Positions 12,033 through 60,141 of a stretch of DNA of 64,000 bases are shown here, piece after piece. Made by a program: the position numbers and the translations under genes. Source of the DNA: Haliotis cracherodii (taxonomy: Eukaryota); the NCBI RefSeq assembly GCF_022045235.1, contig NW_027266319.1, forward strand, positions 42,532,001-42,596,000, written 5' to 3'. The notes beneath the pieces are model-generated. The model saw nothing but the letters and a program-made list of their open reading frames with translations, searched no databases and had not been told where the DNA came from. Positions within the stretch are counted from its first letter, which is position 1, and the number at the start of each line of letters is the position of its first letter.

Positions 12033-12116
12033 ATGAAAACCATTCCAGATACCAATGGAACAACTGAGAATGGTGCTAATGGCCATGCCAATGGAGAGGC
12101 TAAGCAGAATGGGAAG
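12033..12116 (+). CDS. AHCYL1: First coding exon of an IRBIT/adenosylhomocysteinase-like isoform (MKTIPDTNGTTENGANGHANGEAKQNGK)
   Basis: aaaATG with in-frame TGA upstream at 11967-11969; strong donor AAG|GTAAGG in phase 0, in frame with exon 15657; NG-rich disordered N-terminus. Confidence 0.7.
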
Positions 12117-12194
12117 GTAAGGTGGTGACATGGCATTGTACACCAGTTGAGAAGTTCTGTCACTACATCAGTGTAGGACAGTGTCATCAGTGTC

Positions 12195-13398
12195 TTCCTA
12201 CATGAAGGGGGCATGTTCAGTCATTAATCTATGGTGCTTCATGTACATCAGGGTTGCTTGTGTGTGACACTGGACTCCTACATGAAGGGGCATGTTCAGT
12301 CATTAATCTGTGGTGCTTCATGTACATCAGGGTTGCTTTGTGTGTGACACTGGCTTCCTACATGACACACCAAGGGGGCATGTTCAGTCATTAATCTGTG
12401 GTGCTTCATGTACATCAGGGCTGCTTTGTGTGACACTGGACTCCTACATGACACACCAAGGGGGCATGTTCAGTCATTAATCTGTGGTGCTTCATGTACA
12501 TCAGGGTTGCTTTGTGTGTGACACTGGCTTCCTACATGACACACCAAGGGGGCATGTTCAGTCATTAATCTGTGGTGCTTCATGTACATCAGGGTTGCTT
12601 TGTGTGACACTGGACTCCTACATGACACACCAAGGGGGCATGTTCAGTCATTAATCTGTGGTGCTTCATGTACATCAGGGTTGCTTTGTGTGTGACACTG
12701 GACTCCTACATGACACACCAAGGGGGCATGTTCAGTCATTAATCTGTGGTGCTTCATGTACATCAGGGTTGCTTTGTGTGTGACACTGGCTTCCTACATG
12801 ACACACCAAGAGGGCATGTTCAGTCATTAATCTGTGGTGCTTCATGTACATCAGGGTTGCTTTGTGTGACACTGGACTCCTACATGACACACCAAGGGGG
12901 CATGTTCAGTCATTAATCTGTGGTGCTTCATGTACATCAGGGCTGCTTTGTGTGACACTGGACTCCTACATGACACACCAAGGGGGCATGTTCAGTCATT
13001 AATCTGTGGTGCTTCATGTACATCAGGGTTGCTTTGTGTGTGACACTGGCTTCCTACATGACACACCAAGGGGGCATGTTCAGTCATTAATCTGTGGTGC
13101 TTCATGTACATCAGGGTTGCTTTGTGTGACACTGGACTCCTACATGACACACCAAGGGGGCATGTTCAGTCATTAATCTGTGGTGCTTCATGTACATCAG
13201 GGTTGCTTTGTGTGACACTGGACTCCTACATGACACACCAAGGGGGCATGTTCAGTCATTAATCTGTGGTGCTTCATGTACATCAGGGCTGCTTTGTGTG
13301 ACACTGGACTCCTACATGACACACCAAGGGGGCATGTTCAGTCATTAATCTGTGGTGCTTCATGTACATCAGGTTTGATTTGTGTGTGACACTGGCTT
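12195..13398. repeat. ~86-88-bp minisatellite, ~14 copies
   Basis: Unit ggggcatgttcagtcattaatctgtggtgcttcatgtacatcagggttgctttgtgtgacactggactcctacatgacacaccaag. Confidence 0.95.
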
Positions 13399-57334: not shown

Positions 57335-57510
57335 CTGGACGTAAGAGGCAACATAACTGGTTGGTCAGGTTCCGTGAATTAGTTGACAATGTGACATTTT
57401 TAAAAAGATAGCAGAGATTGTTGCTCATAATATCAATCACTGATTTGTCTGGTCCAGACTCAATTATTTACAGGCTGCTGTCGTATGGCTGGAATATTGC
57501 CAGAGTGAGA
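57335..57510 (+). mobile_element. SINE family D (Nin/Deu-like) fragment
   Basis: cgtaagaggcaac..ggtcaggttc..caatcactgatttgtctggtccagactcaattatttacag shared with 63561-63764. Confidence 0.75.
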
Positions 57511-60082
57511 CACAAACATTGTGATGTATTCTGTGAAAGACATTGACCTCAGGGAGTGACCTTTGTGCCAGCTAACTGATTATCAATATTGTGTCATCCT
57601 GTCTGCGCCACTGGCCATAATTTATCTGTTGTGTTTGACAGAGAGGAGACCGTTGTACACTGGCTCTGGACAGAAACTCAAGTGTACCAACACTGGAGAT
57701 CAGTAAAACCTATATAATGTGATGAAGTAATATGGACTGACGTACAGTAATCACTGTGTTTGTATGTAAATTGGTGACATGTGACAAATCTAGATGCTCC
57801 ACACTGTAGCTGGTGCATATAAAACGGCTACAGATTGTTATTGGGGTCAGTAGCAAATAGTGGCCAGAGGTTGCTGACCGTGTTACATCACCATCAAGTT
57901 GATCCACGGTGCAGGTCAACACACCTGCCAGGAGAAAGAAGGAATCATGTATATTTACTTTGAAAGTGAATTGGTAAATGACTTACTTCAATAGGCTGTG
58001 TGAACTTATAATAAGGCCCATGACCTTTATCGGACAATGTTATCCCAAGGGTAACTAAATCTACACATCAAGTTCGACATAAGTGCAATGTTACGTCACT
58101 GATTACCAGATGTCCCCTCGGGCTAAGATTGAGATGTTGGCCGTGTTTGAGAAGTGGTGCCTTGGGCTGTGTGCTGCACCATACTTTTACCTGCTAAAAC
58201 AGTCCATACTCTTGTGTGTAGACATCGCTTGTCATCACCAAAACAAATCAGGACATCACAATAGACACTTATTAATGCTGACCTCAGTGGCTTGGAGCTT
58301 CCCAATCCTTTATAGGTGTGTGCCTGAAGGCAGTCGGAAGTCTACGCAGGATATGCATACATTACACCTGTCAGCTAAGAAATGACGTTCATATTTTCAT
58401 ACATCACCCATGACAATTACTATCCTGTGGTAGGCACTGGACCTGTACCCCTGTCTAGGTTGACATCAGTTGAGGAGAGAGAGATTGTCCACTCTATTAT
58501 CTGACAGTCACTGGACAACACAGGTATTCCACTCTTACCTGACAGTCGTCCAGCTTTCACGGCAGTCACACACTTTAACACAGGAGTACACTAGCAGCAA
58601 CTACCATCATAATGAGAGACCATAGTGTTTGTAAGTATCCAGGGTGTGGTACCAGTGCCCCACACAATACACACATTGTACATTGAGTGGTCTAAGCTAA
58701 CCTGTAATTCAGAATCTGTGTTTCTTAAAAAAAAAAAAAATGTTTTTGAATGTCTGTTTTCATCAAACACTGCAAGAAGTTTCAATCATTCTTCACAATG
58801 CTTCTAATGCTTCTTGATGCCATTGTGTTTGTCTTGTGAGCCACTCACACATTGCCCTGCGTTTATTCATCCTTGTCTGGTGGCAGGTTGGCTCTGTGTC
58901 TCAGCTACCTGCTGTAGAGGAAGAGGTGCATACACCTCTCCATGTCAGGTCACACAGAGTTGGTTATTGTTATTATTCTGTAACCTGTTCCTTTCAGTTG
59001 TGTTGTAAGACAGTAGACATCAGTGACCTATTTACTTTTTCAGCATATGCATTGAATGATAGTATACTTATGTTTCCCAACAAGAGCCTTTTTCAAATCA
59101 TATCAGTACATATCCACACAAGATCTGATATGTAACCTCGTTTTTGTTCATGATGCATACTTTGAATATAGCTTGGCCTTAGTTTGAGGACATTGTCCCT
59201 CTTTCTATGTAAAGATATATGGCTAGAGAATATTGGGGATAATAGCTTGATAGTTATAAATATACTGACATTTGCTTCAAAGACAAGACAAGCTTGGAAA
59301 ATGATGGCGTCTCTACAAGAAATCATATGGCAGCCAATTTCCTCTGTACATAGCAGGAAGCCCGACACATGTAATGACCGTGAATTGTGTCCTCTGCCGG
59401 CTGGCATAGGCTACCTCCCTTCTGCCAAGGTGAAACCAATGACGCTGCCTGTCACACACAAATAAACCTGTCCTCATCTTTCCACCTCTCTGTCTCCTAA
59501 GTCAGAGTATTTGTCATGCCTGACAGTTCCGTCCTGCAGAGCATGTAGACTAACTGCTTGAGGCATCTCCTGCCCACTAGAATTAATTACACAGAGACCC
59601 CTAGGTTATGCAGTTCCTACAGGACCTAAACCTGTGTTGGAATTATGTTTAAAGTTTCTTATACAGTAATTAGACTCAATTTGTCCATATTAGGGATATA
59701 TCAGCAGCTTGAATGTACACTTGAGACCAGACATTTTGAGTCATGGCCTTCTATTGTATGAATAGTGATGGTGAAAAAAAGAAGATCTTTCTATGTTTAT
59801 AGTGAACTATGCTATTTTTGACAGGCCTCTCTGACAAACCAAAGCTACGTGTTGTTTTTCTTGCCAATGTACAGGGGTCCCTTATTTCAAGACACTTTGA
59901 TCTGCTTAAAGCAGACAGAATTAAATACATCTAACAAAATGTCAAGGATTTGAGGATTTAATCACATCTTGATAAAGAACCCAACAAAATCCAATCTAAT
60001 GGAAATGTCAGTGAATGTGAAGTAAATTAGCAGGTTTGCTTTTCTGGGATGTAAATTTTTATGGCTCTTATTTGTTTTTCAG

Positions 60083-60141
60083 CATCCTACACAGGCAGCT
60101 CATCTGATGAAGAAGATATCAGTCCAAGAGAGAAACCTCAG
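60083..60141 (+). CDS. AHCYL1: IRBIT/AHCYL common exon encoding the second half of the serine-rich region ([20 protein letters not shown])
   Basis: Acceptor ttatttgtttttcag|, donor CAG|GTAAGT (phase 1 to phase 0); matches vertebrate IRBIT ASYTDSSDDEVSPREKQQ. Confidence 0.93.

Follow-up and report, generated by a model that had tools for sequence, protein, structure and literature searches.

In Haliotis cracherodii, the 64,000-nucleotide stretch analysed here (contig NW_027266319.1, positions 42,532,001 to 42,596,000, read on the forward strand; hereafter the window, in whose coordinates all positions are given unless a contig is named) holds the 5′ half of the only AHCYL/IRBIT gene in the genome, and an intron of about 44 kb contains a second, conserved 5′ coding exon in addition to the canonical N-terminal exons. 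The analysis covered the 64-kb window plus the adjoining sequence of contig C56, within a genome of 1.18 Gb. That the gene is single-copy follows from mapping PF05221 and the mollusc proteins P0253 and P0254 exon by exon: PF05221 matches five exons downstream of the window on the same strand (C56, 42597170–42645674), both proteins are collinear with this locus, and the only other match in the genome is the true AHCY gene on contig C2. The latter is compact, occupying about 6 kb (C2, 5090547–5096932, minus strand) in comparison with more than 100 kb for the AHCYL gene. Judged by its sequence, the gene is an AHCYL/IRBIT orthologue, with a serine-rich, RxxS-primed i+3 ladder (S68/S71/S74/S77) in exon 2a, an acidic CK2-type cluster and SP site (S80/T82/S84/S85 and S90) followed by FCVxN in exons 3 and 4 (phosphosites of both exons assigned after PMC13319452), and a C-terminal AHCY-like domain (PF05221/PF00670). 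These features and the collinear mollusc proteins bear out the IRBIT-like identity proposed in a preliminary description of this DNA; phosphorylation-dependent target binding is a prediction for this gene.

The canonical 5′ part is formed by exon 2a, exon 3 and, as a plausible, unconserved candidate for the first coding exon, exon 1a. Exon 1a encodes MKTIPDTNGTTENGANGHANGEAKQNGK (MKTIPDT...QNGK) and ends in the donor AAG^GTAAGG (the caret marks the splice junction), the phase of which fits exon 2; neither the window nor the 30 kb preceding it contains a match to the bivalve-type N-terminus (..GLKFDKKLSETERSTR). Donors were scored with a simple position-weight matrix, by which the three constitutive donors reach 7.2–8.6, exon 1a standing at 7.2. 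Exon 2a, between the acceptor ttttcag^GAA and the donor CAG^GTGAGC, codes for EIKYNLTPNRPRIHSRSVSQSSTDSYSS and leaves one base over for a split codon (phase 1); its ladder, SRSVSQSSTDSYSS, is identical at 14 of 14 positions to that of the vertebrate protein P0157, and the exon shares 79% identity over 29 amino acids with Solemya P0253. Exon 3 (59 nucleotides, acceptor tttttcag^CA, donor CAG^GTAAGT) completes the split codon (Ala) on the other side of a phase-1 intron, which is as large as first described, about 44 kb, and within which all six candidate features listed in the preliminary description lie at the coordinates and in the frames given there. Exon 4 follows just past the end of the window, and exon 5 and the AHCY-domain exons continue downstream, up to C56 42645674. 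Exons 3 and 4 are separated by a phase-0 intron of about 4 kb (window 60142–64000 and C56 42596001 onward). The corresponding ASYTGSSS...AEQ region is a single exon in most animals, as read from read-through calls (e.g., P0013 and P0161–P0164), and the phase-0 intron looks like a lineage-specific gain.

Table 1. Features of the AHCYL/IRBIT locus and of the window around it (window coordinates, except exon 4).
Feature	Position	Strand	Evidence or remark
Exon 1a, candidate first coding exon of the canonical isoform	12033–12116	+	ATG, open frame, phase 0 out
Exon 2a, canonical IRBIT Ser-rich ladder (S64–S77 equivalents)	15657–15741	+	splice sites read directly
Intron 2–3, phase 1, 44,341 nt	15742–60082	+	minisatellites and dispersed repeats; holds exon 1b
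Exon 1b, alternative first coding exon, 81 codons + 1 base	40634–40877	+	sequence, conservation, gene models of relatives
Exon 3, shared acceptor exon, CK2-type cluster and SP site	60083–60141	+	splice sites read directly
Exon 4	contig C56 42596192–42596279, just past window end	+	sequence read
Proposed start, MADEGDMSGLGSSEASQFSP	49167–49227	+	donor score 3.2; unsupported
Proposed start	22592–22667	+	donor CTG^GTCAGG, score 2.2; unsupported
Proposed start	47758–47821	+	donor GAG^GTACAA, score −0.3; unsupported
Proposed RGG cassette	19438–19506	+	donor CAG^GTTGTA, score −2.8; unsupported
Proposed 21-nt cassette	25570–25590	+	donor CCG^GTGCTG, score −0.6; unsupported
RNase H open reading frame and zf-RVT match	317–625, 1699–2562	−	PF00075, E 2.6e-7; weak zf-RVT match
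FLYWCH zinc-finger open reading frame	7937–8503	+	PF04500, E 7.8e-6

Exon 1b has the layout of an alternative first exon. It starts with its own ATG, five codons downstream of an in-frame TAA and with no AG between the two, so that no usable acceptor lies upstream, and it ends at a T^GTAAGT donor (40877/8) in phase 1, the same phase as the exon 2a donor (15741/2). The exon is single-copy in the genome and contains the motif RAGRKRHSVQLDK and a ladder of the form RRSS-TT-S-TG-T-LD-S; Pfam found nothing in it. Its translation matches 11 database proteins of 45–142 amino acids (E 1e-10 to 1e-27, 55–75% identity), and similar proteins occur in at least eight other molluscs, namely Pomacea, Batillaria, Babylonia, Nucella, Plakobranchus, Elysia, Ruditapes, and Tegillarca. 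Across gastropods and bivalves 29 columns are invariant, with the core AYRARAGRKRHSVQLDK...DRRSSTxSTG, and the similarity ends exactly at the donor, where gene callers read on into the intron, which is the pattern of purifying selection confined to the exon. Furthermore, four gene models (P0006, P0159, P0160, and P0254, from Batillaria, Babylonia, Elysia, and Ruditapes) splice the homologue of exon 1b straight onto exon 3 sequence and then onto ...KNSKG...AEQ. The Elysia model, P0254 (327 amino acids), maps onto this genome as exon 1b, exon 3, exon 4, exon 5, and onward.

On this basis, we consider it highly probable that one gene has two mutually exclusive 5′ coding modules, A and B, both spliced in phase 1 to the acceptor at 60083. 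Module A would be exon 1a (candidate) together with exon 2a, and module B exon 1b alone, lying inside the intron and giving a different, 81-residue N-terminus. Since exon 1b has its own ATG and lacks an acceptor, it presumably also has its own promoter. For H. cracherodii itself, we infer that exon 1b is transcribed and spliced and has a promoter of its own, as well as which kinases act on the protein and what effect this has on function. The canonical module is likewise conserved, in Solemya (P0253, EIKYNLAPARPKLRSRSVSQSSTDSYSS) and Dreissena (P0165), and, as far as gene structure and conservation can tell, molluscs have two 5′ modules for one acceptor.

Several observations weigh against the two-module interpretation. 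The donor of exon 1b is weak on its exon side (TCT^GTAAGT, score 0.9). The B-type proteins spliced to exon 3 are gene models annotated in other species and not H. cracherodii transcripts, and exon 1a lacks conservation. Our searches used single exons or natural database proteins as queries, in length windows that excluded the full-length isoforms of this genus (about 510–540 amino acids), and gave no A-type protein from a gastropod; the conservation of exon 2a is therefore the sole argument for the use of module A in gastropods. Finally, the CpG observed/expected ratio is low and flat across the window (median 0.30), which makes it a poor guide to promoters, and a scan of the window gave no CpG island or CpG-rich promoter signature upstream of 12033 or 40634, the small CpG peaks at 21.0–21.7 kb and 55.7–57.2 kb not coinciding with any proposed start. 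Some of these points would also fit a different account, in which exon 1b is conserved without being a first exon of the AHCYL gene here, but would be a relic or an exon of another, nested transcript: splicing of exon 1b in this species is deduced, the exon side of its donor is weak, and the database entry P0001 is itself a read-through call made on this DNA. Against this account, the exon keeps 81 open codons, the 29 columns noted above do not vary from gastropods to bivalves, conservation breaks off precisely at a GT whose phase, 1, fits exon 3, reading through the donor adds only 14 unconserved codons before a stop, and four independent annotations join exon 1b to exon 3. We regard a relic or nested transcript as very unlikely.

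If both modules are used, the consequences can be set out by reference to mammalian IRBIT, in which PKA phosphorylates S62/S64/S66, S68 primes CK1 phosphorylation at S71, S74, and S77, and CK2 sites are found at S80/T82/S84/S85 (PMC13319452). In the two-step model, priming of the ladder is followed by the S80/S84/S85 core, with pS80/pS84/pS85 modelled inside the inositol trisphosphate (IP3) pocket and pS71/74/77 as anchors around the pocket (PMC13319452, 2026). The positions S62–S77 map to the exon ahead of the conserved intron, and S80–S90 to exon 3. Module A would thus supply residues corresponding to S64/S66, to S68 as the primer and to the CK1 ladder S71/S74/S77, and module B potential sites for basophilic kinases in the invariant basic RAGRKRHSVQLDK motif and in DRRSS, while exon 3 would contribute the acidic CK2-type cluster and the SP site constitutively. 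Choice of promoter would then select both the priming kinases and the upstream, PP1-docking-like region, and the core binding segment and the AHCY-like domain would be kept in both isoforms. With regard to docking, HSVQL of the RAGRKRHSVQLDK region appears to resemble the KIQF-type PP1-docking motif of mammalian IRBIT.

The two ladders also differ in how they are aligned with exon 3. When DRRSSTTSTGTLDSL is joined through the split-codon Ser to SYTG, Ser/Thr residues fall at −12, −9, −6, and −3 from the S80-type Ser of exon 3, and an Arg stands at −3 from the first of these, so that the i+3 ladder is RxxS-primed and continues in register into exon 3. Batillaria, Babylonia, and Elysia have the ladder in this form too, and bivalves have a looser one. 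In protostome module A, one Ala instead of two precedes SYT, and the canonical ladder is therefore one residue out of register with S80. The preliminary description had proposed that promoter and exon choice swaps, deletes or interrupts the IP3-mimicking segment itself, leaving some forms to act only through the AHCY-like domain. Of this, the swap stands in part, in that exon 1b would replace the S62–S77-type part; deletion and interruption do not, S80/S84/S85 being encoded by the constitutive exon 3, and no evidence was found that any form would act by its AHCY-like domain alone.

The intron that separates the two halves of the serine-rich region was examined in about 340 N-terminal fragments from many animals, retrieved with natural database proteins as queries. 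The SYT(G/D)SS motif occurs in 223 of them, and in 186 of these the upstream part is unrelated and similarity starts exactly at (A)ASYT. The other side of the intron is seen in P0062, P0074, and P0082, which read ...STDSYSS, then G, then junk, the G arising because a phase-1 G^GT is read through; after the junk, P0074 picks up again downstream and P0082 does so at AASYTDSSDDE. Taken together, the read-through calls and the starts of similarity indicate that the phase-1 intron at SYSS^A is common to arthropods, vertebrates, and molluscs. As inferred from these fragments, it is ancestral and no local invention, so that the split of the serine-rich region, first taken for a peculiarity of this gene, is none. 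What is particular to the H. cracherodii gene is the size of this intron and the extra phase-0 intron that cuts the ASYT...AEQ exon.

The same intron had been described as holding interchangeable phase-1 exons: alternative starts at 40634, 49167, 22592, and 47758 and cassettes at 19438 and 25570, giving many isoforms, including ladder-less ones. All six are indeed frame-compatible and lie in genome-unique DNA, and the donor at 49227 is moderate, yet outside exon 1b candidates of equal quality are expected by chance. Counting distinct ATG-to-phase-1-GT candidates of at least 19 codons and a donor score of at least 2, the intron has 10 on the plus strand and 16 on the minus strand; frame-preserving phase-1 cassettes that score no worse than those at 19438 and 25570 number 51 (plus) and 96 (minus). 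The donors of all five score poorly beside the constitutive ones, and without its donor the frame of the 25570 cassette runs into a stop. Compared with the N-termini of the approximately 340 fragments, none of the five candidate peptides resembles any relative, and it is only 40634 that matches gastropods and bivalves; a tblastn search of the window with all stored N-terminal parts gave no further conserved exon in the intron, and no relative examined has an insert between the ladder and the SYTG junction. An origin of the weak candidates from dispersed repeats was also considered; the DNA at 19438, 22592, 25570, and 47758 occurs once in the genome, an observation that speaks neither for nor against the candidates.

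For the start at 49167, DNA of related organisms could be consulted. Contigs were compared over 48976–51130 (2,155 letters, a stretch free of the long tandem arrays); they are of low depth, collinear with the genome and about 96–97% identical to it, and look like DNA of close relatives. Those of three related organisms pass unspliced through the donor at 49227 (X9, 49006–49569; X1, 49005–49282; X2, 49098–49354), and no joint or loose end occurs at 49227 in the relatives' contigs. Of the three substitutions within the 61 nucleotides of 49167–49227, one is in a third codon position (49202) and two are non-synonymous (F to S at 49219 and P to L at 49225); the flanks differ by about 3%. The pattern shows no coding constraint, and contigs of this kind cannot prove absence. 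A search of sequencing runs with 49050–49400 gave matches in 4–5 organisms at small shares (0.05–0.19), with no RNA-labelled run among them. The five candidates are thus at chance level and without similarity to relatives, and we consider the full set of starts and cassettes as a source of isoforms most improbable; of the proposed alternative starts, 40634 holds, by its conservation up to the donor and the spliced models, and 49167, 22592, and 47758 are set aside, as are both cassettes.

Much of the introns is repetitive. An array of a 35-bp unit (about 38 copies, 15736–17058) starts in the last six nucleotides of exon 2 and repeats that exon's donor, CAG^GTGAGC; if the frame of exon 2 is continued into the unit, a TAA comes after five codons. 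Further minisatellite arrays lie at 12205–13399, 33222–35188, 35638–37571, 41222–43655, 48170–48975, and 53135–54624. Two arrays border first exons, one of 86 bp × 13 about 90 nucleotides past exon 1a and one of 25 bp × 100 beginning 345 nucleotides past exon 1b. The arrays yield many long spurious open reading frames on both strands. At 49740–50155 and 50345–50540 there are dispersed repeats resembling short interspersed nuclear elements, with at least 40 copies of 70–76% identity on many contigs and a depth of up to about 2,700 in the contigs of related organisms. Upstream of the gene, the RNase H and FLYWCH open reading frames and the zf-RVT match listed in Table 1 look like remnants of mobile elements.

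The age of module B is less clear than its conservation within molluscs. Spiders have B-like proteins (P0078 from Araneus and P0336 from Nephila) that read MPAFKDRTRRRMSLPIG...NRR(A/S)STASTGSDS and then SYCDTSSDEEGK..., and a spliced A-type spider fragment, P0317, has the same downstream SYCDTSSDEEGK exon. A profile of the mollusc B exons ranks P0336, P0078, and P0012, the last a lophotrochozoan-like, B-like protein, first among 252 upstream parts. These comparisons make an origin of module B older than the molluscs possible. Taken further, the A/B pair might be an ancient, protostome-wide design in which two kinase-primed ladders feed the same CK2 core via the conserved phase-1 acceptor, a proposal that we put forward tentatively and consider on the whole doubtful. 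If true, A (canonical) and B (RRxS-STxST) would constitute a hard-wired “phos-code” switch operated by promoter choice, and lineages with two paralogues, such as vertebrates and flies, may have split the same role between genes. Nearly as probable as not is the simpler account that B is a mollusc-specific novelty and that the B-like N-termini of spiders and others are convergent similarities of low complexity. The profile matches are weak (E 0.006–0.04 among the 252 targets) and are due mostly to NRR(A/S)STASTG, and the A and B profiles are not significantly alike; on the other hand, the three top-ranking matches are all B-like and stand above all canonical ones, and A-type P0317 and B-like P0078 and P0336 all precede the same SYCDTSSDEEGK exon. 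The idea that B arose from exon 2a by duplication is unsupported, hhalign of A against B having reached a probability of only 1.5%, short of significance.

IRBIT acts as a hub in the regulation of IP3 receptors, bicarbonate transporters, and ribonucleotide reductase, and the pattern of phosphorylated serines is believed to determine its targets. A conserved isoform pair in which the ladder and the upstream docking region are swapped, with the proposed IP3-pocket core (S80/S84/S85 type) and the AHCY-like domain held constant, would be a natural test of the two-step, two-site binding model and of the part played by N-terminal context in the choice of partner. The preliminary picture is corrected here to two modules at this locus instead of six or seven. 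The B-type N-terminus is already present in public protein sets as unremarked gene models; we found no paper describing it in the literature searched, which is no proof of novelty.

In comparison with mammalian IRBIT (AHCYL1), the gene has the same order of a Ser-rich S68/S71/S74/S77 ladder, an acidic CK2-type cluster with SP site, FCV(K/R)N and the AHCY-like domain, as well as the phase-1 intron between S77 and the S80-type serine. Unlike its mammalian counterpart, the gene is single-copy, carries a single Ala, not two, to link the ladder with S80, with the ladder of module A out of i+3 register, has its ASYT..AEQ exon cut by an extra intron, and has a second 5′ module to replace the whole ladder-bearing part. 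Alternative N-termini on one gene of the IRBIT family are shared with Long-IRBIT (AHCYL2), for which N-terminal splice variants V1–V4 with altered stability, target spectrum and cell-type expression are reported (ref. 14 of PMC7966362). In the mammalian Long-IRBIT variants examined here (e.g., P0041 and P0311), however, the variable part lies upstream of an intact RRSLSRSISQSSTDSYSS, whereas the mollusc exon replaces that segment with a different ladder. Finally, the A/B pair is similar to the paralogue pairs AHCYL1/AHCYL2 of vertebrates and AhcyL1/AhcyL2 of Drosophila, each consisting of two IRBIT-type proteins with a shared AHCY-like domain and a different N-terminus and partners; in flies, ribonucleotide reductase is bound by IRBIT and not by IRBIT2 (bioRxiv 10.1101/737262). 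In contrast to these pairs, the two N-termini of the H. cracherodii locus would come from the choice of first exon in one gene, not from two genes.

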